Under the pieces are notes generated by a model. That model made no database searches. It was not told where the DNA came from and worked only from the letters and a program-made list of their open reading frames with translations. A stretch of 64,000 nucleotides of DNA from positions 5,456,001 through 5,520,000 of the forward strand of contig NC_047029.1 in assembly GCF_902652985.1 (NCBI RefSeq), written 5' to 3'. Made by a program: the position numbers and the translations under genes. This DNA comes from Pecten maximus (taxonomy: Eukaryota). Below are positions 11,274 through 63,053 of the stretch, piece by piece (the first letter of the stretch is position 1; each line of letters starts with the position of its first letter).

Positions 11274-11274
<1 letters not shown>

Positions 11275-11310
<36 letters not shown>
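11275..11310. repeat. (GTT)12 microsatellite
   Basis: Direct reading. Confidence 0.95.
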
Positions 11311-11311
<1 letters not shown>

Positions 11312-11613
11312 TTGTTTTTGTACAAATGTATGTGTCCTACTTGACCTCGTCCTTGAATGGCCGCTGCTGTTAAGAGGATGTTCAACCTCAACCCAGCAAA
11401 TGTTCTCCGTATTGATGGCTATTGGAATACACATATCATTATATTTAGAGTGGTAAGCGTAAAAATACGATTTAAAATGAATTGTTTTGTCGGCCTAAAA
11501 CCTTCATCGTAATACAATGATACGCCAGCTGTTAGCTGATATAACCAATAAGTAACGTTTGCAATTGATTTAAATACATATAAAATGTATCTTTCAGGTT
11601 TAAAAACACCACA

Positions 11614-11970
11614 ATGACGACGACAGATTTCGAGCATTTGCCAATCACCTTCCAACTCCCGAACACCACGACGTCACCTGGCGCGGAAGGCAACCTGACG
11701 GAACCTGGAGAGGAGCTTACCGCGGACAGCATCATAGTTCCGGTGATCTGGGCGCTTCTGGTGATTATTGGGACAATAGGCAATGGGATAGTGATTTATA
11801 TACTGAGCAGGTATGGCGAACGGACTGTGACTAATATATATGTCGTCAATCTAGCCTTCTCCGACCTTACCTTCATCGTGATAGTACTACCAATCACGGC
11901 CATACACTTTGTTATACCCACGTACATGTTCGGAGAGGTGGTGTGCCGGATCAGTATCTACCTGATATAC
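11614..11970 (+). CDS. Neuropeptide GPCR, kisspeptin-receptor/GPR54-like (galanin/allatostatin-A receptor group); first coding exon (N-terminus, TM1, TM2, start of TM3). Exon probably starts at 11598 after ctttcag
   Basis: N-glycosylation sequons NTT/NLT, TM1 GTIGN, TM2 NLAFSD, ECL1 YMFGEVVC. 119 whole codons followed by a gtaagt donor (phase 0). Confidence 0.92.
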
Positions 11971-14900
11971 GTAAGTATTAACGAATTGATGATTGTTATA
12001 ACGACTTGCTACGTGGACATTGCATGGTTATGAATAGTACATACGTCAATGAGCAGTATTTTATTTTTGTTGTTAATGACATGTTAACATTTCCATAAAC
12101 TCGTACATGTACTTAACGTTAACGAACCATCAGTGTGAAAAGGTCATTAGGGCCATATAGTGAGTAAAACTAATTTAAAACAGGGAAAATATACAAATGA
12201 TCAATCTAAAGATTTCCATTATGCAAAATCCTTTATATTTTTGTTAATGAAAAAAGTTGCCTCTTATCTGGATAGCTTAATCTTGTATAAATAAATTGGT
12301 ACAAACAGCTTAAAATTGGCTAAATTAAATTAAAATTGAAGCAAGAAGGCTGTTTGTACGGCCAGGGGCGATTTTTATCAATGCTCCTCAACTTAAGCAA
12401 ATCGCGACGAGCATACAAATAACAATATAGCAAGACAGTTTTCCTATAGATATGATATAGATACAGCGATACGCCAATGATTCCTGAAGAGATGTTCATC
12501 GTGTTGATAGATCCTACGTGACGATCATAATACATGTACAGTAATAGGAATGTCTCCCTTCCCTCAATCAGAATTGGTAGATTACATGGGAGATTCCATG
12601 ATATATCAAGCTTCCTGACATCGAAGCATTTTTTTAACCTATATCCTGGTTGTTAAGATGTCAGCTCCTAGACAGAGCGCTGCAGCATCAACGTGGATAT
12701 AACAGGAGTTGTATATCACTGCATGTCGAATGCGGCGAAAAGTGGCCACCCTGAATAATTCGGAATTGGGTACCGTGTCTTCTACCTTTGGAATATTGAA
12801 GAAACCAAATTCTGCCCCATTGCAACACTATGGATCTTTAATCTTTCCTTTCTCCCCTAAATACTCTATGTGTCTGTGCTTTGTATCATTCTACACACAA
12901 AGAAACCGACCTTATAAATACACTGTAAACAATCGACTATATACTACGTAATGGCTCGTTGCAGCGAACATGTTTATGAAATTAACCGAAGATATTTATC
13001 TAAAACAAATTTTAGAGAAAGCAAAGCATACCGTTAAAACTGTTAAAATAAAGTAAATATTATCAATACCTTATGATATCTGAAACAAACTACTTGAAAC
13101 CACCCTGACGCCCCTGACACTTTCTTGTTCCTAGGTCCCTAATCTATGTATCCAGTAGAATAGATAGTGAAGGAACGAGGACAGAATGTGACAGTGTTAT
13201 TGACATCTATTGCGGAATCGTAGCCTTATGTCTGTGCCTTCTTCTGCCGACAATAAAGAACCTAAACTGATATGCAACCTCAATAAAAATGTCCCACTCT
13301 AAGTGTCATGCCATTTATCATTCTGTTCATTATACTGGCACCGGGAAAAGCCATGTATGTTCCATACGCATATATTAATTTGGTGATTAAGATTTTTTTC
13401 ATTTCAATTTCAACAAATTTTATTATACAAGATGTTATAGTACAAAGGGATTTGACAACAGGCTTTTCCCACTAAATTAAGATTAAGATGCTTAGGTATT
13501 TTCAGGTTTATGATACATTTGTATACATGTATGTATGTATTTTATCTAATTTTCTACTGATTCAAATTTTAATGCTTCAATTGATCGCCACCGGATATGT
13601 GTGTTGCAATTGTATTCATGAAGGCTTGACATTATGTACGTCAGCAGGTTATATGTGCATTTGGCATCAACAGAAAAGAAGTACTTCTGGTCATTATGCT
13701 GTTGTTAAACGAGCATTTTCCAAATCGGAAATACGTCTTTATCGTTACGTTTAATCGCAATTCATTCCCCACAATTAAAGTACATGCTCCTTGACAGAAA
13801 CACAGCTTTCTTGTCTGTGGAAGCAAATCGCATTGCTGATTTCAATTTGAATCTAGGACATCCCTGAGGTGTCTTAGGTCAGTCAGTATTGGTGAACTGT
13901 CAACTCCGGCCATCAGAAATTGAGTCTCAGGAGAAATTAGATTAAGGTATGCTCGCCATGCGCTTTCACGCCAACCATTATATCCACACGCTGTTTACGA
14001 CGGAGAAGCACAGACGTTATAGGATTCCTTGTTTCCCTGGCTGTTCTTTAATAGTATATCAATAACAGTGATTCCTTAAAACAAGCTGGACTATCGACAG
14101 GCTAAATTAATAGATGGAACCTCTATATTCATTAACTTAATTTATTCATATAGATACCGTTTCCTTGTCTGGTTACACTCCTTAAAATATTTTGCAAGCC
14201 AAACCTATGTTGTTATCCATATATATTTTACGTTTTATCTTATATTCTGTATTACATATACCTAGGAGAACAATATTAAATGAAAAGAGCAGCGATATCT
14301 AGAAAGACCATTTTCTTCTCGAAAACGCATCACTGTTAATGTTGAACTACATTTTATAAGCACCTTAATAATAACATTTCCGTGTCTTTATTTTCCTGTT
14401 TATAATGTTGTACGTGCTCAAAAAGCATTTAACATGAAAGTACACATTGTCTTCTATATAACAACGACCCTTTCATATTTAGTGCAGCGTCATGACTTGT
14501 AAATGTAACAACATTAACACCGTTAGAGATTTTCGCAAAGTACAACAAACAAATCACTTTTTTAGGAATCTGGAATCAACTAAAAAGGGTATATCAATAT
14601 TATTTTTAAACGTACTATGTATCTGATTGATTTTAACAATTCCTTTCAAAAACATCAATTTATTGTCGGGGAAAGGCCAAATGACGTAATTTTTCGCTTT
14701 ATAATCAAAGTTTCCCCCTATTTGTCACGGACATCATCCAGGTACACCACCAAATCTACATTGGTTAATTTCCTATTCAAATAATCTCGGATACGAGGTT
14801 GTAATTTCAGTAAATATACGATGGCTGTTTATGTTCATGTCGCGTTACGGAAATTTGCATCGTTTTTAGTATCAGAAACGAACAAACACCCCTACACGAA

Positions 14901-17579: not shown

Positions 17580-20380
17580 TGTACTACGCTCTGCTCTCTA
17601 ACTGTACATTCGATGTTCTAGTCTGTACGTTATACTACGTTCTGCTCTCTAACTGTACATTCGATGTTCTAGTCTGTACGTTAGACTACGCTTCTGATCT
17701 CTAACTATACATTCGATGTTCTAGTCTGTACGTTAGACTACGCTTTGCTCTCTAACTTGTACATTCGATGTTCTAGTCTGTACGTTAGACTACGTTCTGA
17801 TCTCTAACTGTACATTCGATGTTCTAGTCTGTACGTTATACTACGTTCTGCTCTCTAACTGTACATTCGATGTTCTAGTCTGTACGTTATACTACGTTCT
17901 GATCTCTAACTGTACATTAGATGTTCTAGTCTGTACGTTAGACTACGTTCTGATCTCTAACTGTACATTAGATGTTCTAGTCTGTACGTTATACTACACT
18001 CTGCTCTCTAACTGTACATTAGATGTTCTAGTCTGTACGTTATACTACGTTCTGCTCTCTAACTGTACATTAGATGTTCTAGTCTGTACGTTAGACTACG
18101 CTCTGATCTCTAACTGTACATTAGATGTTCTAGTCTGTACGTTAGACAACGTTCTGCTCTCTAATTGTACATTAGATGTTCTAGTCTGTACGTTAGACAA
18201 CGTTCTGCTCTCTAATTGTATATTCGATGTTCTAGTCTGTACGTTAGACTACGCTCTGTTCTCTAACTGTACATTCAATGTTCTAGTCTGTACGTTAGAC
18301 TACTCTCTGATCTCTAATTGTACATTCGATGTTCTGGTATGTACGTTATACTACACTCTGCTCTCTAACTGTACATTCGGTGTTCTAGTCTGTACGTTGA
18401 TGGACTACCGCTTGACTCTAACTGTAACATTCGATGTCTAGGTCTGTTACGTTAGACTTACCGCTCTGATCTCTAACTAGGTACATCGATGTTCTAGTCC
18501 TGTACGTTAGACTACGCTTTGCTCTCTAACTATACATTAGATGTTCTAGTCTGTACGTTAGACTACGCTCATGATCTCTAACTGTACATTAGATTTCTAG
18601 TCTGTACGTTAGACTACGCTTTTGCGCCTCTAAACTGTACATTCGGTGTTCTAGTCTGTACGTTTAGACTACGCTATGTATCTAATTGTACATTGATGTT
18701 CGGTAATGTACGTTAGACTTGTTTTGCTCTCTAACTGTAACATTCGTGGTTCTGGTATGTCGTTAGACTAACGCTCAGCTCTCTAACGTACATTCGTGTT
18801 CTAGTCTGTACGTAACTACCTCTTATCTCTAACTGTACATAGATGTTCTAGTCTGTAATTTAAGACTACGTTTTCTGTCTCTAATTGTAACATGCGATGT
18901 TCTAGTCTGTACGTTAGACTACGCTTTGCTCTCTAACTGTACATTAGATGTTCTAGTCTGTACGTTAGACTACGCTCTGATCTCTAACTGTACATTAGAT
19001 GTTCTAGTCTGTACGTTAGACTACGCTTTGCTCTCTAACTGTACATTCGGTGTTCTAGTCTGTACGTTAGACTACGCTCTGATCTCTAATTGTACATTTG
19101 ATGTTCTGGTATGTACGTTAGACTATGTTTTGCTCTCTAACTGTACATTCGATGTTCTGGTATGTACGTTAGACTACGCTCAGCTCTCTAACTGTACATT
19201 CGGTGTTCTAGTCTGTACGTAAGACTACGCTCTGATCTCTAACTGTACATTAGATGTTCTAGTCTGTAAGTTAGACTACGTTCTGATCTCTAATTGTACA
19301 TTCGATGTTCTAGTCTGTACGTTAGACTACGCTCTGATCTCTAACTGTACATTCGATGTTCTAGTCTGTACGTTAGACTACGCTCTGATCTCTAATTGTA
19401 CATTCGATGTTCTAGTCTGTACGTTAGACTACGCTTTGCTCTCTAACTGTACATTCGGTGTTCTAGTCTGTACGTTAGACTACGCTCTGATCTCTAATTG
19501 TACATTTGATGTTCTGGTATGTACGTTAGACTATGTTTTGCTCTCTAATTGTACATTCGATGTTCTAGTCTGTACGTTAGACAACGTTTTGCTCTCTAAC
19601 TGTACATTCGATGTTCTAGTCTGTACGTTAGACTACGCTCTGATCTCTAACTGTACATTCGATGTTCTAGTCTGTACGTTAGACTACGCTCTGATCTCTA
19701 ACTGTACATTCGATGTTCTAGTCTGTACGTTAGACTACAATCTGATCTCTAACTGTACATTCGATGTTCTAGTCTGTACGTTGGACTATGTTTTGCTCTC
19801 TAACTGTACATTCGGTGTTCTAGTCTGTACGTTAGACTACGCTCTGATCTCTAATTGTACATTTGATGTTCTGGTATGTACGTTAGACTATGTTTTGCTC
19901 TCTAATTGTACATTCGATGTTCTAGTCTGTACGTTAAACTACGCTCTGCTCTCTAACTGTACATTCGATGTTCTAGTCTGTACGTTAGACTACGCTCTGA
20001 TCTCTAATTGTACATTCGATGTTCTAGTCTGTACGTTAGACTACGCTCTGATCTCTAACTGTACATTCTGTGTTTTAACTGCTTTATATACTACGCCGTG
20101 CTCTCTAATATTACATTGGGTGTTCTAGACCGTACGCTATACTACGCTGCGCATAGTAATTGTACACTCGGTGCTCTAGACTGTACATTATGCTATACTA
20201 TTTTCTCTCTAATTGTACATTAGGTGTTCTCTGGTTTTTACGTAATACTGCGCTCTTCTGTCTTATTGTGCATTCGGTTTTCTCTGGTCTTTACGTAATA
20301 CTGCGCTCTTCTCTCTAATTGTACATTCGGTGTTCTCTAAACCGTACGTTATACCGCTCTCTGCTCAATAATTGTATATA
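17580..20380. repeat. 51-bp tandem array, about 50 copies plus degenerate 3' flank
   Basis: Unit ctctaactgtacattcgatgttctagtctgtacgttagactacgctctgat; 17-aa periodic ORFs; internal inverted repeat tagtct/agacta. Confidence 0.97.
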
Positions 20381-23196: not shown

Positions 23197-25208
23197 ACTC
23201 TATGGATGCACGTACAATGCACGTATGCTCCTACTAACGGTATTGTACTAGATAACTGGTCTCGTTTTTTTGTTTTGTTTTGTTGGATTTTGTGTGTGTG
23301 TGCTGTGTTTTTTAGGATACAACTGTGCTGTAACAATAGACATTATAGAAATATTGAATGGAAACCTCAGCGAGTCATTTCAACTGATATTAATATTGTT
23401 CGTTTTATAGTATACCATTTCAGAAGTATTCTTCTTAAGCTCAACTTTGCGAATCGCTAACAAATTCGTTAAGGTAATAATATATCGAGTCTTACATAGG
23501 CCATATATCTGTATCGGTATACAAAATGTATGTCACAGATCATTTGTCATTTTCCAGTGGAAAAGTACGCCAGTCAAGTCAGTCAGTATGCCGATGTGGC
23601 TGCCTGTATCTTCGCCTCGGTATCGAAGATATAATTAAAGTTATTTACTTTCTCCCGTAGCAGATACAAATCCTGTCGTCCCACGCATCTGTGAACACGC
23701 AAAGATAGTACAACGATGCACATATGTCTTCTTATCTTAGCAACACAATAGCGTGGTACCATGAGGATCACCCAAGGAGAGTCCGCAAACACATTCAGTA
23801 GTATTTACGTTGATAGTAGCCAGCGGGCTATAGATGCCGGTGATGATGGTGGTTAATGGAATTTAAAAGTTATTTTAGATTGACGTGTCACTCGTGGCAG
23901 AGCTGTTGTTGCGTCATTTAGGTATGAGTTACGGTAAATTGACGTACGTGAACGGCGTTCCTCAATTAATGCTTCTTGTAAATGGCAGGGGTCCCAATTA
24001 GAAGGAAAATGATCTGGTTACATCGTTACCAAATGATATTCAAACATTACAGACGCGTGTCCAGTGGCAACGCGCATTTTATTGGTTTAAGGCTACGAAC
24101 AATAAGGTTTGTACTGAGCCACTTGAAAGAAACATGAAATGATCTATTAACCAAACAAACCTCTTGCTTGGGAAAATTGTAAAATTTATTGAAACTGAAT
24201 CGTTTGAAGACAACATGTTTTATGAAAACTTGAGCGTTGTAGTTGAAGTTAAAGGGCTTATCAATATTAAATCTGAAGTTTTCAACGAGATGCGTATTAG
24301 ATGATGATAAAAGCTGCATAGCAATACAATAAAGACTGTTTCTCCAGCACTTTTTTATCTAGCCTACACGCGATGATTGGAATATGCATATCACGGAAGC
24401 CTTAAATCCTGCCATTCTAAACTTCCATCATTTTGTGTTGTAAGTAACACACTGGAATATAATCAGCACGTTTGTACATCACATCAACATACTTGATATT
24501 GAAGAGGATAGCATTTCAAAACACGTCATGCTTCTATCCCAGTGATTCAATACAAGTTCAGAAATGAGTTTGACATTTCATTCAGAACCTGCAATCAGGA
24601 TGTTCCCGCTACTCATCGTTTTACAAACAGGACAAACCACATGGAATACGGAATGTTAACACGTATTCCGGCTGCTCTCAGTCCGACTGTTGTGGAAATA
24701 TGATGCAAAGCGAAGCTTGCTGAAAGTATTGACACAAACGGAAATGACACTGATTGCAAGTGTAAAGAATTTTCTCACAAGACCCTCAAGTGCGGCTGTT
24801 ACTTATGATTTCCAGTAACGGTAACTCTGTATATCATATTAATATGAAAAGATTCAATTTGTGTATTGATCGTAAAGACGCCTTTTAATATTTCATAATT
24901 TTCTTCCTCGGAGGATATGTATGTTTTCCCCGAAATATATATACATTCCCAATTATACAAAATAATACTTGACAGTAGCAGAATCTCTGAACTATTTGGT
25001 CTGCGTCAATAAATGTATTACCGGTGAATATTTTAGCTCGAAACCATTAAACTTCATCAATTATATCACAGAAAAAAACCACATCAAATCAATTCCATCG
25101 TATTTTTGGGAACTCAATTAAAATAGTTTTCAACGATCCTAACATGCCCGGAGCATCGACTTCAAACACATATCCGGTTATATTTCCACGGTTCTTACTT
25201 TATTTAAA

Positions 25209-26696: not shown

Positions 26697-29600
26697 ATCA
26701 CAGTCCACGTCAATTGTCATGTTTTGTACTCATTTCAAATCACCATGCACGCTACCTGTCCTGCATTATACTCAATACAGATCAACTTCACGACACCATT
26801 CTTACGTTTTACTCATTACAGATCACCCTCAACGTCACCTGTCGTACTTATTACATATCACCCTCCACGTCACCTGTCTTACTCATTACAGATCACCCTC
26901 CACGTCACCCATCTTACTCATTACAGATCACCCTCCACGTCACCCGTCTTACTCATTACAGATCACCCTCCACGTCACCCGTCTTACTCATTACAGATCA
27001 CCCTCCACGTCACCTGTCTTACTCATTACAGATCACCCTCCACGTCACCCGTCTAACTTATTACAGATCACCCTCCACGTCACCTGTCTTACTCATTACA
27101 GATCACCGTCTACGTCACCCGTCTTACTCATTACAGATCACCCTCTACGACACCCGTCTTACTCATTACAGATCACCCTCCACGTCACCCGTCTAACTTA
27201 TTACAGATCACCCTCCACGTCACCCGTCTTACTCATTACAGATCACCCTCCACGTCACCCATCTTACTCATTACAGATCACCCTCCACGTCACCAGTCTT
27301 ACTCATTACAGATCACCCTCCACGTCACCAGTCTTACTCATTACAGATCACCCTCCACGTCACCCGTCTTACTCATTACAGATCACCCTCCACGTCACCT
27401 GTCTAACTCATTACAGATCACCCTCCACGTCACCCATCTTACTCATTACAGATCACCCTCCATGTCACCCTGTCTTACTCATTACAGATCACCCTCCACG
27501 TCACCCGTCTTACTCATTACAGATCACCCTCCACGTCACCCGTCTTACTCATTACAGATCACCCTCCACGTCACCCGTCTTACTCATTACAGATCACCCT
27601 CCACGTCACCCGTCTTACTCATTACAGATCACCCTCCACGTCACCCGTCTTACTCATTACAGATCACCCTCCACGTCACCCGTCTTACTCATTACAGATC
27701 ACCCTCCACGTCACCCTGTCTTACTCATTACATATCACCCTCCACGTCACCCATCTTACTCATTACAGATCACCTTCCACGTCACCCGTCTTACTCATTA
27801 CAGATCACTCTCCACGTCACCCATCCTACTCATTACATATCACCCTCCACGTCACCTGTCTTACTCATTACAGATCACTCTCCACGTCACCAGTCTTACT
27901 TATTACAGATCACCCTCCACGTCACCCGTCTTACTCATTACAGATCACCCTCCACGTCACCCGTCTTACTCATTACAGATCACCCTCCACGTCACCCGTC
28001 TTACTCATTACAGATCACCCTCCACGTCACCCGTCTAACTCATTACAGATCACCCTCCACGTCACCCGTCTTACTTATATATCACCCTCCACGTCACCCG
28101 TCTTACTTATTACAGATCACCCTCCACGTCACCCGTCTTACTCATTACAGATCACCCTCCACGTCACCCGTCTAACTCATTACAGATCACCCTCCACGTC
28201 ACCCGTCTTACTTATATATCACCCTCCACGTCACCCGTCTTACTCATTACAGATCACCCTCCACGTCACCTGTCTTACTCATTACATATCACCCTCCACG
28301 TCACCCATCTTACTTATTACATATCACCCTCCACGTCACCTGTCTTACTCATTACAGATCACCCTCCACGTCACCCATCTTACTCATTACAGATCACCCT
28401 CCACGTCACCCGTCTTACTCATTACAGATCACCCTCCACGTCACCCGTCTTACTCATTACAGATCACCCTCCACGTCACCTGTCTTACTCATTACAGATC
28501 ACCCTCCACGTCACCCGTCTAACTTATTACAGATCACCCTCCACGTCACCTGTCTTACTCATTACAGATCACCCTCTACGTCACCCGTCTTACTCATTAC
28601 AGATCACCCTCTACGTCACCCGTCTTACTCATTACAGATCACCCTCCACGTCACCCGTCTAACTTATTACAGATCACCCTCCACGTCACCCGTCTTACTC
28701 ATTACAGATCACCCTCCACGTCACCCATCTTACTCATTACAGATCACCCTCCACGTCACCAGTCTTACTCATTACAGATCACCCTCCACGTCACCAGTCT
28801 TACTCATTACAGATCACCCTCCACGTCACCCGTCTTACTCATTACAGATCACCCTCCACGTCACCTGTCTAACTCATTACAGATCACCCTCCACGTCACC
28901 CATCTTACTCATTACAGATCACCCTCCATGTCACCCTGTCTTACTCATTACAGATCACCCTCCACGTCACCCGTCTTACTCATTACAGATCACCCTCCAC
29001 GTCACCCGTCTTACTCATTACAGATCACCCTCCACGTCACCCGTCTTACTCATTACAGATCACCCTCCATGTCACCCGTCTTACTCATTACAGATCACCC
29101 TCCACGTCACCCGTCTTACTCATTACAGATCACCCTCCACGTCACCCGTCTTACTCATTACAGATCACCCTCCACGTCACCCTGTCTTACTCATTACATA
29201 TCACCCTCCACGTCACCCATCTTACTCATTACAGATCACCCTCCACGTCACCCGTCTTACTCATTACAGATCACTCTCCACGTCACCCATCCTACTCATT
29301 ACATATCACCCTCCACGTCACCTGTCTTACTCATTACAGATCACTCTCCACGTCACCAGTCTTACTTATTACAGATCACCCTCCACGTCACCCGTCTTAC
29401 TCATTACAGATCACCCTCCACGTCACCCGTCTTACTCATTACAGATCACCCTCCACGTCACCCGTCTTACTCATTACAGATCACCCTCCACGTCACCCGT
29501 CTAACTCATTACAGATCACCCTCCACGTCACCCGTCTTACTTATATATCACCCTCCACGTCACCCGTCTTACTTATTACAGATCACCCTCCACGTCACCC

Positions 29601-32600
29601 GTCTTACTCATTACAGATCACCCTCCACGTCACCCGTCTAACTCATTACAGATCACCCTCCACGTCACCCGTCTTACTTATATATCACCCTCCACGTCAC
29701 CCGTCTTACTCATTACAGATCACCCTCCACGTCACCCATCTTACTCATTACAGATCACCCTCCACGTCACCAGTCTTACTCATTACAGATCACCCTCCAC
29801 GTCACCAGTCTTACTCATTACAGATCACCCTCCACGTCACCCGTCTTACTCATTACAGATCACCCTCCACGTCACCTGTCTAACTCATTACAGATCACCC
29901 TCCACGTCACCCATCTTACTCATTACAGATCACCCTCCATGTCACCCTGTCTTACTCATTACAGATCACCCTCCACGTCACCCGTCTTACTCATTACAGA
30001 TCACCCTCCACGTCACCCCGTCTTACTCATTACAGATCACCCTCCACGTCACCCTGTCTTACTCATTACATATCACCCTCCACGTCACCCATCTTACTCA
30101 TTACAGATCACCTTCCACGTCACCCGTCTTACTCATTACAGATCACTCTCCACGTCACCCATCCTACTCATTACATATCACCCTCCACGTCACCTGTCTT
30201 ACTCATTACAGATCACTCTCCACGTCACCAGTCTTACTTATTACAGATCACCCTCCACGTCACCCGTCTTACTCATTACAGATCACCCTCCACGTCACCC
30301 GTCTTACTCATTACAGATCACCCTCCACGTCACCCGTCTTACTCATTACAGATCACCCTCCACGTCACCCGTCTAACTCATTACAGATCACCCTCCACGT
30401 CACCCGTCTTACTTATATATCACCCTCCACGTCACCCGTCTTACTTATTACAGATCACCCTCCACGTCACCCGTCTTACTCATTACAGATCACCCTCCAC
30501 GTCACCCGTCTAACTCATTACAGATCACCCTCCACGTCACCCGTCTTACTTATATATCACCCTCCACGTCACCCGTCTTACTCATTACAGATCACCCTCC
30601 ACGTCACCTGTCTTACTCATTACATATCACCCTCCACGTCACCCATCTTACTTATTACATATCACCCTCCACGTCACCCGTCTTACTTATTACATATCAC
30701 CCTCCACGTCACCAGTCTTACTTATTACAGATCACCCTCCACGTCACCCGTCTTACTCATTACAGATCACCCTCCACGTCACCCGTCTTACTCATTACAG
30801 ATCACCATCCACGTCACCCTGTCTTACTCATTACAGATCACCCTCCACGTCACCTGTCTAACTCATTACAGATCACCCTCCACGTCACCAGTCTTATTCA
30901 TAACAGATCACCCTCCACGTCACCCATCTTACTCATTACAGATCACCCTCCACGTCACCAGTCTTACTTATTACAGATCACCCTCCACGTCACCCATCTT
31001 ACTTATTACATATCACCCTCCACGTCACCCATCTTATTCATTACAGATCACCCTCCACGTCACCCATCTTACTTATTACAGATCACCCTCCACGTCACCC
31101 GTCTTACTCATTACAGATCACCCTCCACGTCACCCGTCTTACTTATTACATATCACCCTCCACGTCACCCGTCTTACTCATTACAGATCACCCTCCACGT
31201 CACCCGTCTTACTCATAACAGATCACCCTCCACGTCACCCGTCTTACTCATTACAGATCACCCTCCACGTCACCCGTCTTACTCATTACAGATCACCCTC
31301 CACGTCACCCTGTCTTATTCATTACAGATCACCCTCCACGTCACCCCGTCTTATTCATTACATATCACCCTCCACGTCACCCATCTTACTCATTACAGAT
31401 CACCCTCCACGTCACCCATCTTACTCATTACAGATCACCCTCCACGTCACCCGTCTTACTCATTACAGATCACCCTCCACGTCACCCATCTTACTCATTA
31501 CAGATCACCCTCCACGTCACCCATCTTACTCATTACATATCACCCTCCATGTCACCCGTCTTACTCATTACCTATCACCCTCCACGTCACCCATCTTACT
31601 CATTACAGATCACCCTCCACGTCACCCATCTTACTCATAACAGATCACCCTCCACGTCACCCGTCTTACTCATTACATATCACCCTCCACGTCACCAGTC
31701 TTACTTATTACAGATCACCCTCCACGTCACCCATCTTACTCATTACATATCACCCTCCACGTCACCAGTCTTACTTATTACATATCACCCTCCACGTCAC
31801 CCGTCTTATTCATAACATATCACCCTCCACGTCACCCGTCTAACTTATTACAGATCACCCTCCACGTCACCCGTCTTACTCATTACAGATCACCCTCCAC
31901 GTCACCAGTCTTACTTATTACATATCACCCTCCACGTCACCCATCTTACTCATTACAGATCACCCTCCACGTCACCCATCTTACTTATTACAGATCACCC
32001 TCCACGTCACCCGTCTTACTCATTACAGATCACCCTCCACGTCACCAGTCTTACTTATTACAGATCACCCTCCACGTCACCCGTCTTACTTATTACAGAT
32101 CACCCTCCACGTCACCCGTCTAACTTATTACTTATCACCCTCCACGTCACCCGTCTTACTCATTACAGATCACCCTCCACGTCACCTGTCTTACTCATTA
32201 CATATCACCCTCCACGTCACCCGTCTAACTCATTACAGATCACCCTCCACGTCACCCGTCTTACTCATTACAGATCACCCTCCACGTCACCCGTCTTACT
32301 CATTACAGATCACCCTCCACGTCACCCGTCTTACTCATTACAGATCACCCTCCACGTCACCTGTCTTACTCATTACAGATCACTCTCCACGTCACCCTGT
32401 CTAACTTATTACAGATCACCCTCCACGTCACCTGTCTTACTCATTACAGATCACCCTCTACGTCAACCGTCTTACTCATTACAGATCACCCTCCACGTCA
32501 CCTGTCTTACTCATTACAGATCACCCTCCACGTCACCCGTCTAACTCATTACAGATCACCCTCCACGTCACCCGTCTTACTCATTACAGATCACCCTCCA

Positions 32601-35084
32601 CGTCACCTGTCTTACTCATTACAGATCACCCTCCACGTCACCCGTCTAACTCATTACAGATCACCCTCCACGTCACCCGTCTTACTCATTACATATCACC
32701 CTCCACGTCACCCGTCTAACTCATTACAGATCACCCTCCACGTCACCCGTCTTACTCATTACAGATCACCCTCCACGTCACCTGTCTTACTCATTACAGA
32801 TCACCCTCCACGTCACCCGTCTAACTCATTACAGATCACCCTCCACGTCACCCGTCTTACTCATTACAGATCACCCTCCACGTCACCCCGTCTTACTCAT
32901 TACATATCACCCTCCACGTCACCTGTTTTATTCATTACAGATCACCCTCCACGGCACCTGTCTTACTCATTACAGATCACCCTCCACGTCACCCGTCTAA
33001 CTCATTACAGACCACCCTCCACGTCACCTGTCTTACTCATTACAGATCACCCTCCACGGCACCTGTCTTACTCATTACAGATCACCCTCCACGTCACCCG
33101 TCTTACTCATTACATATCACCCTCCACGTCACCCGTCTTACTCATAACAGATCACCCTCCACGTCACCCTGTCTTACTCATTACATATCACCCTCCACGT
33201 CACCTGTCTTACTCATTACAGATCACCCTCCACGTCACCCGTCTTACTCATTACAGATCACCCTCCACGTCACCTGTCTTACTTATATATCACCCTCCAC
33301 GTCACCCGTCTTACTCATTACAGATCACCCTCCACGTCACCCGTCTTACTCATTACATATCACCCTCCACGTCACCCATCTTACTTATTACAGATCACCC
33401 TCCATGTTACCTGTCTTACTTATTACAGATCACCCTCCACGTCACCCGTCTAACTCATTACAGATCACCCTCCACGTCACCCTGTCTTACTCATTACATA
33501 TCACCCTCCACGTCACCAGTCTTACTTATTACAGATCACCCTCCACGTCACCCGTCTTACTCATTACAGATCACCCTCCACGTCACCCGTCTTACTCATT
33601 ACAGATCACCCTCCACGTCACCCGTCTAACTTATTACAAATCACCCTCCACGTCACCTGTCTTACTCATTACAGATCACCCTCCACGTCACCCGTCTTAC
33701 TTATTACAGATCACCCTCCACGTCACCCGTCTTACTCATTACAGATCACCCTCCACGTCACCCGTCTTACTCATTACAGATCACCCTCCACGTCACCAGT
33801 CTTATTCATTACAGATCACCCTCCACGTCACCCATCTTACTCATAACAGACCACCCTCCACGTCACCTGTCTTACTCATTACAGATCACCCTCCACGTCA
33901 CCCGTCTTACTCATTACAGATCACCCTCCACGTCACCCGTCTTACTCATTACAGATCACCCTCCACGTCACCCATCTTACTCATTACAGATCACCCTCCA
34001 CGTCACCCATCTTACTTATTACAGATCACCCTCCACGTCACCCGTCTTACTCATTACAGATCACCCTCCACGTCACCCGTCTTACTCATTACAGATCACC
34101 CTCCACGTCACCCATCTTACTCATTACAGATCACCCTCCACGTCACCCATCTTACTCATTACAGATCACCCTCCACGTCACCCGTCTTACTCATTACAGA
34201 TCACCCTCCACGTCACCCGTCTAACTCATTACAGATCACCCTCCACGTCACCCGTCTAACTCATTACAGACACCCTCCACGTCACCCGTCTTACTCATTA
34301 CAGATCACCCTCCACGTCACCCGTCTAACTCATTACAGATCACCCTCCACGTCACCCGTCTAACTCATTACAGACACCCTCCACGTCACCCGTCTTACTC
34401 ATTACAGATCACCCTCCACGTCACCCGTCTTACTCATTACAGATCACCCTCCACGTCACCCGTCTTACTCATTACAGATCACCCTCCACGTCACCCGTCT
34501 TACTCATTACAGATCACCCTCCACGTCACCAGTCTTATTCATTACAGATCACCCTCCACGTCACCCATCTTACTCATAACAGACCACCCTCCACGTCACC
34601 TGTCTTACTCATTACAGATCACCCTCCACGTCACCCATCTTACTCATTACAGATCACCCTCCACGTCACCTGTCTAACTCATTACAGATCACCCTCCACG
34701 TCACCTGTCTTACTCATTACAGATCACTCTCCACGTCACCCATCTTACTCATTACATATCACCCTCCACGTCACCTGTCTTACTCATTACAGATCACCCT
34801 CCACGTCACCCATCTTACTCATTACAGATCACCCTCCACGTCACCTGTCTTACTCATTACAGATCACCCTCCACGTCACCCTGTCTTACTTATTATAGAT
34901 CACCCTCCACGTCACCCATCTTACTCATTACATATCATCCTCCACGTCACCCGTCTTACTCATTACAGATCACCCTCCACGTCACCCGTCTTAATTATTA
35001 CAGATCACCCTCCATGTCACCTGTCTTACTTATTACATATCACCCTCCACGTCACCTGTCTTACTCATTACAGATCACCCTCCA
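26697..35084 (+). repeat. 35-bp tandem array (~236 copies, ~8.3 kb) derived from the intron/exon-2 junction of the GPCR
   Basis: Unit actcattacag-atcaccctccacgtcacccgtctt versus the exon junction ttgccag-gtcaccctccacgccacctgtcttac at 35106-35138. Confidence 0.97.
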
Positions 35085-35112
35085 GTTAATTTGTCTTACT
35101 TTGTCTTGCCAG

Positions 35113-35248
35113 GTCACCCTCCACGCCACCTGTCTTACGTTGATGGCCATGACGATAGACCGATACTTCGCCATCGTCTTTCCTATACAGTCTATGAACT
35201 GGCGGAACGCTCTCGTGGCCACCATTGTCAGCGTTGCCGTATGGATCG
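35113..35248 (+). CDS. GPCR second coding exon (TM3 with DRY, ICL2, TM4), 136 nt
   Basis: ttgccag acceptor, VTLHATCLTLMAMTIDRYFAIVFPI...VSVAVWI, gtgagt donor; phase 0 to phase 1, compatible with both neighbouring exons. Confidence 0.95.
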
Positions 35249-35383
35249 GTGAGTTCTGTAATCTGATTGACATATAATGGTCTTGTGAATCCACGTGTTT
35301 AAGATTATTGTCTGAGTATAGCTACAACCGTTGAAATAATACAGATATGGATAACAATCATAATCAAAGGTGTATCTCTTACT

Positions 35384-35508
35384 CATACCGCAGCCTCCCA
35401 AAACACACATACGCACTCGCTACACGCATACATGTCGCACGCATGGGAGGCCGTCCTTAAATGACCTTAGCTGTTAATAGGACGTTAAACAAAATAAACC
35501 AAACCAAA
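35384..35508 (+). mobile_element. 5'-truncated copy of the long SINE with a perfect 12-bp target-site duplication
   Basis: TSD gtatctcttact at 35372-35383 and 35509-35520; roughly 90% identical to the reverse complement of 22667-22795. Confidence 0.92.
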
Positions 35509-35883: not shown

Positions 35884-38345
35884 TATATTTGTTTGTATAT
35901 ATACGACAGAAGATATATTTTGTTTATATACGACATACATGATATATTGTGTCTGTATATACGACATACAAGATATATTGTGTCTGTGTATATGACAGAA
36001 GATATATTGTGTTTGTATATACGACAGAAGATATACGTAGTGTGTCTGTATATACGACATACAAGATATATTTTGTTTGTATATACGACAGAAGATATAT
36101 TTTGTTTGTATATACGACAGAAGATATATTGTGTCTGTATATATGACATACAAGATATATTGTGTCTGTATATATGAAATACAAGATATATTGTGTTTGT
36201 ATATACGACATACAAGATATATTTGGTTTGTATATACGACATACAAGATATATTGTGTTTGTATATACGACACAAGATATACGTAGTGTGTCTGTATATA
36301 CGACAGAAGATATATTGTGTTTGTATATACGACAGAAGATATATTTTGTTTGTATATATGACATACAAGATATTTTGTGTTTGTATATACGACAGAAGAT
36401 ATATTTTGTTTGTATATACGACAGAAGATATATTGTGTTTGTATATACGACATACAAGATATTTTGTGTTTGTATATACGACAGAAGATATATTTTGTTT
36501 GTATATACGACAGAAGATATATTGTGTTTGTATATACGACAGAAGATATATTGTGTTTGTATATATGACATACAAGATATTTTGTGTTTGTATATACGAC
36601 AGAAGATATATTTTGTTTGTATATACGACAGAAGATATATTGTGTTTGTATATACGACATACAAGATATTTTGTGTTTGTATATACGACATAGATATATA
36701 TTGTGTTTGTATATATGACATACAAGATATTTTGTGTTTGTATATACGACAGAAGATATATTTTGTTTGTATATACGACAGAAGATATATTGTGTTTGTA
36801 TATACGACATACAAGATATATTGTGTTTGTATATACGACATACAAGATATATTGTGTCTGTATATATGACATACAAAATATATTGTGTTTGTATATACGA
36901 CATACAAGATATATTTGGTTTGTATATATGACATACAAGATATATTGTGTCTGTATATACGACATACAAAAGATATTGTGTTTGTATATACGACATACAA
37001 GATATATTTGGTTTGTATATATGACATACAAGATATATTGTGTCTGTATATACGACATACAAAATATATTGTGTCTGTATATATGACATACAAGATATAT
37101 TGTGTCTGTATATACGACAGAAGATATATTGTGTCTGTATATACGACATACAAAATATATTGTGTCTGTATATATGACATACAAGATATATTTGGTTTGT
37201 ATATACGACATACAAAATATATTGTGTCTGTATATATGACATACAAGATATATTGTGTCTGTATATACGACAGAAGATATATTGTCTGTATATACGACAT
37301 ACAAGATATATTGTGTTTGTATATATGACATACAAAATATATTGTGTCTGTATATACGACATACAAAATATATTGTGTCTGTATATACGACATACAATAT
37401 ATATTGTGTCTGTATATATGACATACAAAATATATTGTGTCTGTATATACGACATACAAAATATATTGTGTCTGTATATACGACATACAATATATATTGT
37501 GTCTGTATATACGACATACAATATATATTGTGTCTGTATATATGACATACAAGATATATTTGGTTTGTATATACGACATACAAGATATATCGTGTTTGTA
37601 TATACGACAGAAGATATATTGTGTCTGTATATATGACATACAAGATATATTGTGTCTGTATATATGACATACAAGATATATTTGGTTTGTATATACGACA
37701 TACAAGATATATTGTGTTTGTACATTTTGTATATACGACATACAAGATATATTGTGTCTGTATATATGACATACAAGATATATTTGGTTTGTATATACGA
37801 CATACAAGATATATTGTGTTTGTACATTTTGTATATACGACATACAAGATATATTGTGTCTGTATATATGACATACAAGATATATTGTGTCTGTATATAT
37901 GACATACAAGATATATTGTGTTTGTACATTTTGTATATACGACATACAAGATATATTGTGTCGGTATATATGACATACAAGATATATTGTGTCTGTATAT
38001 ATGACATACAAGATATATTTTGTTTGTATATACGACATACAAGATATATTGTGTCTGTATATATGACATACAAGATATATTGTGTCTGTATATATGACAT
38101 ACAAGATATATTGTGTCTGTATATATGACATATAAGATATATTGTGTCTGTATATACGACATACAAGATATATTGTGTCTGTATATATGACATACAAGAT
38201 ATATTGTGTCTGTATATATGACATACAAGATATATTGTGTCTGTATATATGACATACAAGATATATTGTGTCTGTATATACGACATACAAGATATATTGT
38301 GTCTGTATACAATGTATATGACATAGATATATTTGGTTTGCATAT
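35884..38345. repeat. 29/31-bp AT-rich tandem array, about 80 copies
   Basis: Units tatattgtgtctgtatatacgacatacaaga (31 bp) and tatattgtgtttgtatatacgacagaaga (29 bp). Confidence 0.97.
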
Positions 38346-39605: not shown

Positions 39606-41180
39606 ATGTTTTCATTCAAACCTCAGTTTCGAAATGATAAGGTTTTGGAGGTTTTGAAAGTTATCTGTAAACTCCTCTATATTCTCACATATAATATATA
39701 TTGTTTCATGGTTGCTGAGGGGTTAAAGTTAACATTTACTTTCTGTAATCGCTAAGAATACTTTTGGGGAAATATCTTTTTTAGACTTAGACTTGCTACG
39801 CAAAATGTAATATAACGTTTTTGATGTTAGTGTTGAAAGACATCAGTAAACTCCTTTATTATTGTACTTGGGTGTTAACATTTGGTTTTGGGGTAGTGGT
39901 AGTTGTTTTAACTATAATTTCCCGGAGTCAAACATGTTAACTACAATACAAAACCAAACACAAACTATGTCTACCTTTGTATATTGCAATATAATTTTGC
40001 TTAAATATCGCTATCTTTGGACATACCATCTAGTTGATTAACTCATTCCCTGATTCTAGTGTGAGCTATAGTGATATATAGTTTGAGGCGAGCTTTACAC
40101 CAAAATTGGTACTCTTTTTCAAGCAGGTTCTTCATATTATTGAGGTGGTAATATTTTGTCATCATCTAATAGACTGCAACAATATTTTTAAGAATCCGAC
40201 GTGCAACGTCCGTGCAGCATGGCTATCAGGCATCAACGCGAAAAGGTTAAAATGGGCGACAGTTAAAGATACAATGTACTCCAAATGGGCAGAAATTATA
40301 GCGAATATCAAGTAAGACTATCATTTTTCCGCGAAGAAATCTGATTACTTGTACTGTTGAAACAAAATAGGCTATTAGCTTTACTCGGTAAAAGACTAAC
40401 CCTGTAATATCGATTTCCAGGACAGCTAAGGTTTTGCGCGGTGAAAAAGAAGGGAATAAGTTATCGAAAATATATTTCTTAAAGGTACCGAATCAAGCCC
40501 CTATCCATCTAACTTAAACGCGACAACTTATGTAAAAGTACATGTTGAATATAACCCCGGAAAATGCTTTGAACGTAAAGGGTAACCATCCCTAATTTCC
40601 CTTGGATAGTTCCCACCCATTTTCTACCCGAGTATTTCCGTTTATCTTATGTTAGAAACATACCTAGTCGATCATTTGATTTGTTCTGAATACAATTGCC
40701 CTTTATATACCAATTTTCCTTAGACTGATTTCGTCTATCACTCGGGCGAAACACGATTGTCGAGGCAGTACGTGTAGATCTCTTAACCTTATCCCCAGAC
40801 AGTGTTACGGCTTCTCACATCGTTAGGCGTGGGACGGACCTATCCGTCTTTCAAACAATCATTGACAGTTTATCGAGAGACGTTGACGTGTAATTCGCTT
40901 CACTAAATAACCACCGTTCATCGTCTGACCTCGTGATAAATTCATCAAGTATTTCGTTCAGAAATTTTTAGTTTTGGATTTTGGTCATTGTTTAGTCTAG
41001 GATTTGTCTTCTGTATTGATGCCTTCATTAACCAAGCCTAAGCGACGCTACTCCACCGGTATAGATAATCATTTCGGAAATGATACTTTCAACTGACATA
41101 AAGGTAACGCAGTAAACAGATTTCTTAGTACCTCCTGTCAATAGCTTTGTGCATTTAAGGAAGGCCTTACATGTGTGCTG

Positions 41181-41394
41181 GGGGGCCGCAGTGGCCGAGT
41201 GGTTAAGGTGTCATGACACTTTATCACCAGCCTTCCTTCTCTTGGTTGCGATTTCGAAACCTACGTGGGGCAGTTGCCAGGTACTGACTGTAGGCCAGTG
41301 TTTTTTCTCCGGGTACTCCGGCTTTCCTCCACCTCCAAAACCTGGCACGTCCTTAAATGACCCTGCATGTTAATAGGACGTTAAACAAAAAAAA
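41181..41394 (+). mobile_element. tRNA-derived V-domain-like SINE
   Basis: A box tggccgagtgg, B-box-like tttcgaaacc, ttttctccgggtactccggctttcctcc core, shared tail; near-identical to 48169-48390. Confidence 0.88.
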
Positions 41395-48168: not shown

Positions 48169-48390
48169 GGGGGCCGCAGTGGCCGAGTGGTTTAGGTGTC
48201 CCGACACTTTAACACTATCCCTCCACCTCTGGGTTGCGAGTTCGAAACCTACGTGGGGCAGTTGCCAGGTACTGACCGTAGGCCGGTGGTTTTTCTCCGG
48301 GTACTCCGGCTTTCCTCCACTTCCAAAACCTGGCACGTCCTTAAACGACCCTGGATGTTAATAGGACGTTAAACAAAAACAAACAAACAA
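48169..48390 (+). mobile_element. tRNA-derived V-domain-like SINE, intact
   Basis: A box tggccgagtgg, B box gttcgaaacc, V-like core, tail ending (aaac)n. Confidence 0.9.
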
Positions 48391-60870: not shown

Positions 60871-61091
60871 TCTCCTGTCTGATATCGCTACCGTACGTTC
60901 TGTTCACGAAGCTCTTAGAAAAAAACGGCGTAAGCGTTTGCACACAGCAATGGCCACTAGAGGGCATGAACAAGGGCATGGCTCTGGGCGTAGTGATAAC
61001 ATCGTACATTCTTCCCTTGGGAGTCATACTCGGCTGTTATGGCAAGATTCTCCAATACCTATGGTGGGGAAGCAAACTCAAGAAACACGAT
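60871..61091 (+). CDS. GPCR third coding exon (end of TM4, ECL2, TM5, start of ICL3), 221 nt
   Basis: Strong ttttttgtttttgttttcag acceptor; (V)SCLISLPY...VCTQQWP...SYILPLGVILGCY; gtaagt donor; phase 1 to phase 0. Confidence 0.93.
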
Positions 61092-63053
61092 GTAAGTACT
61101 ATTCCTTCATGTTGTGATGTTTATGTCGCCTTTACTGCCCGGCCATGAAACGTGTACGTTTTATTTAGGCTTCCATATAACTTGCACTTTCACTTGACAC
61201 ATAATGTCATAGGTAACGTAAACTGGCTATTAGTGTTTGTCTACTCAATGTAATCCGAGGATGATCATGAGTTTAATGTACATACAAGTCCGACGGCTTT
61301 AAATTGTTTCATTGCAGGAAGCGGCATATTCAGTTCATTTCCGAATCCAAGATATTGAGTATAGTTAACAGGCGAAAACCTTCGTCATTGCAGTTGACAA
61401 TGTATTCTGTAAATGAACTTTATCTTAAACGTGAACGATTTAGAAAAAGAACTGATGGCTTCCCTAATATACATGAAGGGCGCGTCTACATGTAATATCG
61501 GACGTCAACGTCCATAAAAATCGAAAATGTTACATGACAAATTATAAGCCTAGATCATTAATCCGACAACAAAACGTGTTCTGAATTTATTGGTATTATA
61601 AAATACCAGCAAGTCCGAATTCAACATTTAGATAACACTTGAAATATTACTTCAGGTTTATTTTCATTTCTAAACGCGAAAGTTGATAACATTTAAATAA
61701 TCACCTTACTATAAAAATAATGTATCAATTGTGTTTAAGAAGTAACTGATTTTGTGTTTGAAGCCTGATGATAATACATTTCGCGATATTTATCGATTCA
61801 ATTTTATATAATACGCAAAACCTTATATAAACTCGTTAGTCATGCTCATTCATTGAGTATAAATCACTTTGTTTTTTAAGTTATTTTAGACGTATGAAAT
61901 ACTAAAATATATCAGGAGCGAGATAAAATGTTAAACCAAAAATAGGTATAACATTCTGTTTATTCTAATCTGGGAACAGCAATCGTAAGAACCAGAACAA
62001 GGAAATAAATAATCTCGAACAAATAAAAAAAAAAAAAAGATATATTAACATTTTGTTCATCATGCAAAACAACTTATGTTTCCAAGAAGACAATAAATCA
62101 CCATATTAGGTGTGTAGAATGATATCAAAAATGAGAATTTAACTTTGTGTCCAATGTCAGATCCAAATCAATATTGCAATACATATTTTTGTTGATTTAG
62201 CTGGCTTTAGCAAACGTGTAATTTATTAACGTGACACAGCATCAGCCACAACCGGAACAAATCATCGGTTCTTATTTCAATACTTGACACTACGCTCCGG
62301 AACCAACCATCGGCGCTTCGAATGCTAACAACTCTCACTGGTCATTCCTATTACATTTTACATCAATGGACCCTGAAAAATAAATCAAATATTTAAGTAT
62401 TCTATTGCAGATTAATATCTTATACACAAATTGATAAGGTTATTGAGATATTTCTTTATTAAGATTTATGGCAATGGCAACATGACTATGTTTTCTTCAG
62501 TAAAAACTACCAACGCTAACATTCTGCTCGAACAGTCGCTTCATGGCCGGCCGCACTTTTACAATTGACCCTGATGTACTTTAAAGTGCTCTTGATATAA
62601 TTCTGTTTCCTCATCGGGTTAATGCTAGGGACATCACGTCCATCTATTGCTTGTTAATGTTACCCTGTATATTTAGTATCTGGTCGGCTTATTCGATTGC
62701 TGAGTGATCTTCCAGGCGGACAGGGGACTGTCTATTGAATCTTAGTTCCCACCAATATCATTATAGGTCAGCTGTGTTCGCGTTGAATTGGACAATGTCA
62801 TACAAGAAGACGATGTGGCAATATGACATCATTGTGCCGTAGTTCTCTCGAATGTAGCCCCCAGACACCAGCATTATTTCAATGATATATTGTCACTCAG
62901 GAAAATGCCAAGTGTTTGCTCGTCGCCCTATGTTTATTTGAATATGTTCACAGCACATGCACATCTAGATCTGGTAATATTGATTTCAATCTGGTGGCAT
63001 TATATTTTTAATATTTTTTTTATAAATTCCTCAATTTTCTTTTACTTAAAATG

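Follow-up and report, generated by a model that had tools for sequence, protein, structure and literature searches.

Minisatellites that reiterate a splice site have been described on the donor side of introns. In human F7, the first monomer of a 37-bp minisatellite in intron 7 spans the exon 7/intron 7 boundary, and its 4-8 identical pseudo-donors are silent (Borensztajn et al. 2006, PMC1557585): the exon-proximal site alone is normally used, although the pseudo-sites are functional. To the same class belong IFI6 (6-16), in which the two nearest of 25 pseudo-sites are used, as well as CBS IVS13, LMNB2, and PDGFA (PMC1557585). A VNTR (variable number tandem repeat) with a unit of 25 bp in intron 18 of ABCA7, with alleles of up to ~10 kb, shows retention of one unit, skipping of the downstream exon, and a correlation between length and splicing (De Roeck et al. 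2018, PMC5954066). Here, we describe a 35-bp tandem array in the scallop Pecten maximus that is an acceptor-side, ~240-copy form of this donor-side kind of junction minisatellite. It lies in a stretch of 64,000 nt (contig NC_047029.1 of assembly GCF_902652985.1, positions 5,456,001 to 5,520,000 of the forward strand; hereafter the window, from whose first letter all coordinates are counted), at the end of intron 1 of a gene predicted to encode a G-protein-coupled receptor (GPCR). We think it probable that the array is a lineage-specific minisatellite seeded at the intron 1/exon 2 junction, and that the reason why it is tolerated lies in exon definition, by which the acceptor next to the exon is still chosen. 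Our literature searches for an acceptor-side junction minisatellite found no example.

The likeness to the F7 class is one of architecture. In both cases, an intronic array abuts an exon, the terminal monomer spans the boundary, a splice site is reiterated, and the unit measures 35 bp (scallop) or 37 bp (F7). The differences concern the side of the intron and the copy number (acceptor side and ~240 copies, against donor side and 5-26 copies in the F7 class), and also the content of the unit, which carries 26 nt of conserved coding sequence in the scallop and 4 nt in F7. They also concern the order of transcription. The authentic site is transcribed last in the scallop, whereas that of F7 is transcribed first, in keeping with 5'-to-3' scanning, and such scanning or a first-come-first-served choice would thus favor the scallop decoys. 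With ABCA7, whose unit begins with the splice-site dinucleotide, the scallop locus shares a kilobase-scale, VNTR-type intronic array that starts at a splice site. However, the ABCA7 array is human and on the donor side, with a measured relation between length and splicing, while the scallop array is on the acceptor side.

The array occupies positions 26697-35112 of the window (8416 nt, + strand) as head-to-tail units that directly adjoin exon 2 at 35113. The original prediction had placed its start at 26697 and had it run on the sense strand straight into the exon. Both points hold, since ~3 diverged units with small insertions form a degenerate 5' edge (26697-26812) that reaches exactly to the predicted start (their local alignment score is 55, while 200 shuffles average 14.8 and do not exceed 21), and the repeats are contiguous from there to the exon. 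The homogeneous body follows at 26813-35073, and an irregular last unit of 39 nt (atcaccctccAG ttaatt tgtCTTACtt tgtcttgccAG) closes the array at 35074-35112. Tandem Repeats Finder (TRF) reports a single array at 26805-35084, with a period of 35, 236.8 copies, 93% matches, 0% indels, and a score of 14367. When we parsed the units by their core, we obtained 237, i.e., 236 array units and the copy at the intron/exon junction. Most parsed units are 35 nt long (n=212), and the others have 36 (n=15), 32 (n=7), or 34 nt (n=2). They fall into 63 sequence types with the consensus TCATTACAGATCACCCTCCACGTCACCCGTCTTAC.

Each unit is composed of tcattacAG, 9 nt that look like the acceptor end of an intron, followed by a 26-nt copy of the start of exon 2. 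The 35-mer across the junction itself, tcttgccag/GTCACCCTCCACGCCACCTGTCTTAC (35104-35138; 9 intron and 26 exon nt; here and below, the slash marks the splice position), matches the consensus at 29 of 35 positions. Its exon part is identical to the consensus at 23 of 26 positions and to a T-variant of the unit at 24 of 26, which is the range given in the original prediction, and the similarity ends at exon nt 26. A search for the exon-start 26-mer with at most 3 mismatches gave 137 occurrences in the window, all of them on the + strand and within the array, where 0 were expected. There is no break between the array and the exon, and the sequence at this end reads ...cattacAG atcaccctccAG ttaatt tgtcttac tt tgtcttgccAG/GTCACCCTCCACGCCACCTGTCTTAC GTTGATGG... 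The AG is retained in 194 of the 237 parsed units, nearly always as CAG (193/237), and motifs resembling branch points abound (195 CTTAC and 30 CTAAC). Pyrimidines make up 68% of the array and 51% of the remaining window, and the G content of the array is 7.7%. The tandem array of acceptor-like sequences, the CAG in a C/T-rich context, the yUnAy-like motifs, and the unit translation ITLHVT(C/R)LT thus all stand as first predicted, but the count of ~200+ decoys has to be corrected to ~240 units, of which ~194 have an AG.

All three sense frames of the array are almost free of stop codons (11-17 stops in 8.4 kb and a longest open run of 711 codons); on the antisense strand, each frame contains about 390-400. 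The openness of the sense frames is a by-product of the scarcity of G in the unit. A stop-free translation of 372 aa had no match at E<=0.001 among 5.8 billion protein clusters, a result that speaks weakly against annotated copies at other places. Across the entire window, Rfam (gathering thresholds) and tRNA scans gave no match, and no known RNA gene or tRNA-derived element lies in the array.

The host gene is a predicted class A (rhodopsin-type) GPCR that resembles kisspeptin and galanin receptors. The coding part of exon 1 (11614-11970, + strand) runs for 119 codons from the ATG to a donor gtaagt that begins at 11971, ends in phase 0, and encodes the N-terminus, the transmembrane helices TM1 and TM2, and the first half of TM3. 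This is the donor position of the original prediction, which the sequence bears out. Intron 1 (11971-35112) is 23,142 nt long, and its last 8.4 kb are the 35-bp array; it was delimited from TRF, the gene model, and blocks collinear with orthologous introns. Exon 2 (35113-35248, + strand; VTLHATCLTLMAMTIDRYFAIVFPIQSMNWRNALVATIVSVAVWI) goes from phase 0 to phase 1 and encodes the second half of TM3, the DRY motif, intracellular loop 2, and the start of TM4. The exon half of the repeat unit corresponds to the first 26 nt of this exon. The length of exon 2, 136 nt as predicted, is backed by a donor gtgagt that begins at 35249, by the match to Pfam, and by 100% identity to the annotated protein XP_033762404.1. 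Exon 3 (60871-61091, + strand; 221 nt), located by tblastn with this protein, encodes TM4, extracellular loop 2, and TM5 between the acceptor ttttgttttcag and a donor gtaagt at 61092, and exon 4 lies beyond the window.

The exons were searched singly, and we judged their collinearity from the public protein XP_033762404.1. Exon 1 matches positions 1-66 of the Pfam profile 7tm_1 (E=8.6e-14, 52.1 bits) and exon 2 matches positions 68-111 (35.1 bits), both above the cut-off of 30.5. Residues 1-119 of XP_033762404.1 correspond to exon 1 and residues 120-164 to exon 2. The annotated protein and the Pfam profile are thus collinear across 11970 to 35113 in this computational gene model. With exons 2 and 3 of the window, the protein agrees at 100% identity, and by eye its residues 1-119 are identical to the translation of exon 1 (the 89.6% identity given by tblastn for residues 1-135 takes in read-through into intron 1). 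Across the splice, the conserved cysteine of TM3 and the arginine of the DRY motif are separated by exactly 25 residues, which implies that no repeat unit belongs in the mRNA. A search with exon 1 of 1.8 billion representative proteins led to a 383-aa scallop protein, whose 90% cluster contains galanin receptor type 2-like and GPR54-like sequences of Mizuhopecten yessoensis, Argopecten irradians, P. maximus, and Ylistrum balloti. All 237 core matches recur in the record LR736852.1 of the P. maximus locus (GCA_902652985.1), shifted by a constant 1613, and this record agrees exactly with the final 2 kb of the window. A (TGT)16 microsatellite lies at 11274-11321, ~290 nt upstream of the receptor start codon.

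To place the array in time, we compared the orthologous loci, rather than whole genomes, of M. yessoensis (locus L001), A. irradians (L003), and Y. balloti, each of 70-100 kb. All three have the intron at the same phase-0 position, an exon 2 of 136 nt, and an identical 45-residue peptide, and the sequence upstream of their exon 2 acceptor is ordinary and unique. The unit core, searched with at most 3 mismatches, has 0 matches in these loci. The introns are nevertheless collinear: positions 24808-24894 of the window align with 33078-33164 of L001, and 24842-24905 with 34669-34732 of L003, so that the array falls in the interval from the last shared block to exon 2. Only such more distal blocks align, as we detected no homology between the 5' flank of the array and the sequence just upstream of exon 2 in the other species. 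An assembly gap (N run) in the M. yessoensis locus (L001:27898-28758), ~5 kb upstream of exon 2, has no effect on this conclusion. The comparison of orthologous introns that had been proposed as a check thus yields collinear introns with no unit copies in three genera.

The direction of the relationship between gene and repeat follows from the substitutions. Seven synonymous sites in the first 26 nt of the exon vary among the four species, and at each of them the unit has the P. maximus state; the unit matches the exon start at 24 of 26 positions in P. maximus and at 20-21 of 26 in the other species. The motif VTxxATCxTL encoded by the exon start is also common to receptors of Platynereis and Lineus and to KISS1R-like receptors of vertebrates. 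Since the exon is conserved, the array is present only in P. maximus, and the species-specific synonymous states are shared between the two, the array derives from the gene, as originally argued, and not the reverse. These comparisons indicate that the exon is old and that the array is young, having arisen on the Pecten lineage after its split from the three other genera. One unit of the 5' edge, CACGCTACCTGTC, retains two exon states (C at position 23 and T at position 28) that are absent from the homogenized consensus. Array edges generally escape homogenization, and the states kept in this unit fit that pattern.

With the satellites and the MITE- and Helitron-type elements of bivalves (PMC3879986, PMC5139131), the array shares a higher-order structure, homogenized units, degenerate edges, and a repeat-rich mollusc genome. 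However, those families are multi-locus, often shared among species, and flanked by elements, whereas the source of the scallop array is unique genic sequence, its end is an exon, and three genera have no such array at the orthologous position. At these three loci, it therefore lacks the sharing among relatives that the library model describes for classical satellites. Its flanks are not those of a transposable element either: the 3' flank is the conserved exon, and the 5' flank consists of decaying units followed by unique intron. A dispersed 35-mer, the refuting condition named in the original prediction, was sought in 88 kb of the P. maximus genome, with no copy outside the array, and in public collections ill suited to the purpose. 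A literature search for known satellites of the species surfaced no 35-bp family. An exact 21-mer scan of metagenome contigs gave 0 matches, a weak negative given that this collection is unlikely to contain scallop DNA.

The growth of the array is still visible in its distal part, where the string of unit types shows ~2.6 copies of a block of ~42 units (1466 bp) at about 26850-30900. The autocorrelation peaks at 1466, the windowed identity at this lag is 0.985-1.0, and identity between the first and the second copy amounts to 99-100%. The half of the array that adjoins the exon is heterogeneous. Approximately 45% of the units derive from block duplications, and the distal structure points to recent unequal exchange in large blocks, or block duplication. 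The similarity of units to the exon shows no gradient along the array (mean of 27.7-28.6 out of 35 in all ten bins).

Tandem arrays as such are not unusual in this gene. The receptor introns of all four scallops contain minisatellites with periods of 23-58 bp and lengths of 1-7 kb that are species-specific and mutually unrelated. Summed over TRF arrays with a score of at least 400, their share of the four loci is roughly 16%, 16%, 11%, and 2%. P. maximus has 54 copies of a 51-bp unit in intron 1 (17583-20336) and 79 copies of a 31/62/93-bp unit. In M. yessoensis, there are 51-91 copies of a 29/58-bp unit, 76 of a 27-bp unit, 37 of a 32-bp unit, 30 of a 36-bp unit, and others, and intron 1 of A. 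irradians holds a 6.7-kb array of a 36-bp unit (L003:11936-18652). The 35-bp array is therefore not special as an array, but is special in its nucleation on a splice junction and on conserved coding sequence. The 36-bp array of M. yessoensis (30 copies, 98% match, L001:33876-34951) begins at position +6 of intron 2, directly after the GTGAG donor of exon 2 (L001:33735-33870), and was considered as a second junction-spanning case. We rejected it because its exon-side score of 14 falls within the range of shuffles (up to 22): it merely abuts the exon. The intervals of the receptor introns that are occupied by large minisatellites include 35884-38309 of the window and L001:19916-26236 in M. yessoensis.

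We then considered what distinguishes the true acceptor from the decoys, describing acceptor strength by composition only. Between positions -20 and -4, the decoys have 12 pyrimidines out of 17 and the true site has 13. The true site differs from the decoys by a G at +1, by a U-richer tract (tttgtcttgcc vs. tcatta), and by a spacing of 14 nt between CTTAC and AG, instead of 10 nt, the source of which is the irregular last unit, which is 4 nt longer. This last unit would then supply both the pyrimidine tract of the authentic acceptor and its candidate branch point (CTTAC, whose A at 35098 precedes the AG by 14 nt), and the +1 G, the U-rich tract, and the longer spacing would together make the true site the better one. 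The decoys near the exon would give exon starts at 35086 (+27 nt), 35074 (+39), 35004 (+109), 34969 (+144), and 34899 (+214), among others; the AGs of the first two lie within the irregular last unit. The +39, +27, and +144 options are in frame and stop-free, while most others shift the frame. In-frame use of a near decoy would insert residues into TM3 without triggering nonsense-mediated decay.

The array offers no partner to these acceptors. Its 8416 nt contain 0 GTAAG, 0 GTGAG, and 0 AGGT, and GT occurs only in the contexts CAC/GTCACC and CCY/GTCTTA. In an intron of 23 kb, splice sites are expected to be recognized by exon definition, and for lack of any donor-like site in the array, this mode leaves only those AGs open to pairing that lie no more than a few hundred nt from the donor at 35249. 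We also rejected the idea that the units serve as recursive splice sites (YAG/GTRAGT), as these three motifs are missing. The array resembles NAGNAG acceptors and recursive sites in presenting more than one candidate 3' splice site, all in register, ahead of a single exon, but NAGNAG sites are 3 nt apart and are both used, and recursive sites contain the AGGT that the array lacks; neither mechanism applies.

The decoys themselves do not appear to be maintained. Overall, 18% of the units have lost the G of the AG, and among the 211 units of 35 nt it is replaced in 42, mostly by T. Across distinct unit types, no other position varies as much (20 of 50), with losses on 19 backgrounds. Such an unprotected G argues against selection keeping the decoy acceptors, and its variability would be compatible either with neutrality or with weak selection against decoys. 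The loss of the AG is not enriched near the exon, where 16 of 20 units of the last bin have kept it, against 82% overall.

Together, these observations suggest the following history. The seed would have been a tandem duplication of a 35-bp segment across the boundary between intron 1 and exon 2, comprising 9 nt of the acceptor and 26 nt that encode part of TM3. Only the 3'-most copy is contiguous with the rest of exon 2, and may thereby have stayed the functional acceptor, with the upstream copies becoming intron. Slippage and unequal exchange, the latter most recently in blocks of ~42 units, could then have amplified the segment to ~240 copies and 8.4 kb. We infer that the ~194 decoy AGs are largely silent owing to exon definition in the 23-kb intron and to the lack of a donor-like site in the array, and that among the AGs near the donor at 35249 the authentic site would be favored by its +1 G, its spacing, and its tract. 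The array would most likely be baggage of neutral or mildly deleterious effect. The alternative offered in the original prediction, a neutral expansion that exon definition makes tolerable, fits the measurable evidence, since the array has no donor-like site and similar species-specific minisatellites are common in the receptor introns.

Several points weigh against this account. The silence of the decoys is deduced from orthology and from the computational gene model. Simple measures do not show the decoys to be weak, as they have 12 pyrimidines out of 17 and almost all units contain a CTTAC or CTAAC. Transcription also reaches them before the true site, and some use of them is plausible, especially at 35074, where it would add 39 nt in frame. 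Finally, the array on the donor side of the same exon in M. yessoensis hints at non-random flanks, which pure neutrality does not explain. The occurrence of two species-specific arrays in two genera, one at each end of this exon, seems to exceed a rough estimate of chance.

A rival account, which takes up the splicing rheostat of the original prediction, has the array act as a rheostat or decoy sponge: units would bind U2AF or U2, or be spliced to, pre-mRNA would be diverted to unproductive or variant isoforms, and array length would set the dosage of the receptor. We regard this as unlikely. Some ~194 sense-strand AGs in a pyrimidine-rich context with CTTAC or CTAAC, transcribed before the true site, are what such a device would be made of; the nearest decoys lie within the range of exon definition, two of them adding 39 or 27 nt in frame and without stops, and the human intronic VNTR of ABCA7, whose unit starts with a donor GT, shows that length can correlate with altered splicing (PMC5954066). 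Yet the decoy AG is unconserved within the array, where no position varies more across unit types, exon definition has no donor partner to draw on over more than 95% of the array, and three other genera possess the same receptor but lack the array. The canonical product is also the sole one annotated, and comparable arrays of unrelated sequence are common in the receptor introns. The regulatory reading is so far unsupported and mildly disfavored. In its stronger form, which we likewise give little chance, the array would be a live acceptor-side counterpart of F7-type minisatellites: a length-dependent fraction of transcripts would be lost to decoys or stalled, and the array length, growing by 1.5-kb blocks, would be a heritable dial on the dosage of a neuropeptide receptor. 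If this were true, the nearest decoy would add an in-frame variant of 13 residues in TM3.

The repeat could instead matter at the level of DNA, as a reiterated platform for transcription factors or a chromatin element, and we hold this to be very improbable. The motif CCACGTCA (reverse complement TGACGTGG), at unit positions 19-26, occurs 222 times (26813-35073) and is near-invariant, as are positions 12-27 as a whole, while the other CpG, at positions 28-29, is heavily decayed to TG/CA. Its ACGT core was created by a single C-to-T change from the exon sequence (CCACGCCA), and the motif is a candidate ACGT-core site of basic leucine zipper (bZIP) factors (of the cAMP response element or unfolded protein response element type), which would make ~220 candidate cores. 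But recent homogenization explains the low variation of the core equally well, and the array is unconserved in other species. Also quite unlikely is a real array whose length, along with its near-identical 1.47-kb blocks, results from inflation or mis-joining by the long-read assembler. Assembly errors classically occur in tandem arrays, the 1466-bp blocks are 99-100% identical, and we have seen a single assembly; against this, the degenerate edges, the 63 unit types, the indel variants, and the heterogeneous exon-proximal half have the texture of a real array, and an error of this kind could alter the copy number but not create the homology with the junction. The least credible explanation is that a pre-existing dispersed satellite, or a transposon carrying the repeat, landed by the exon, with the similarity being coincidental or the exon start being captured from the repeat. 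Many bivalve satellites are indeed associated with transposable elements (PMC3879986, PMC5139131). However, the exon start is ancestral, its boundaries and peptide being identical in four genera and its motif shared across phyla, and the match of 24 out of 26, which includes the species-specific synonymous sites, is not one of chance (0 matches expected). The array also enters the exon without an element terminus, and there is no copy elsewhere in 88 kb, none in metagenome contigs, and no protein like the array translation.

The window contains a few other features. At its start (1-1182, + strand, cut by the window start), a reverse-transcriptase fragment in open frames (Pfam RVT_1, below the cut-off) is followed by a GIY-YIG nuclease domain (above the cut-off), in the arrangement of Penelope-like retroelements. 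A short dispersed element with the open frame ...GAAVAEW(L/F)RC... occurs at 41116-41370, 48170-48358, and about 35385-35505, and similar copies are present at multiple sites within the loci of M. yessoensis and A. irradians, which makes it a probable short interspersed nuclear element (SINE) or miniature inverted-repeat transposable element (MITE) of pectinids. It has no match in Rfam or among tRNAs. Intron 1 also contains conserved non-coding blocks at 23600-24900 (L001:31228-33164 in M. yessoensis and L003:32818-34732 in A. irradians), of up to 445 bp and about 70-78% identity, which are possible regulatory elements of the receptor gene.

Even if the array is merely tolerated, it is a natural experiment in the choice of 3' splice sites. 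Its ~194 near-consensus acceptors share the 5'-proximal enhancer content of the exon, because they carry its own first 26 nt, and they are transcribed minutes before the true site, yet the gene model needs the last acceptor only. The array thus pits exon definition against first-come-first-served choice and branch-point scanning, which the donor-side arrays of F7, IFI6, and CBS are unable to do because their authentic site is transcribed first. It also gives a satellite birth that can be both dated and sourced, from a conserved coding junction and after the split of Pecten from Ylistrum, Argopecten, and Mizuhopecten, with block growth still visible. If array length does affect splicing, the array would regulate a kisspeptin/galanin-type receptor through its variable copy number, and would do so in a species that is fished commercially.

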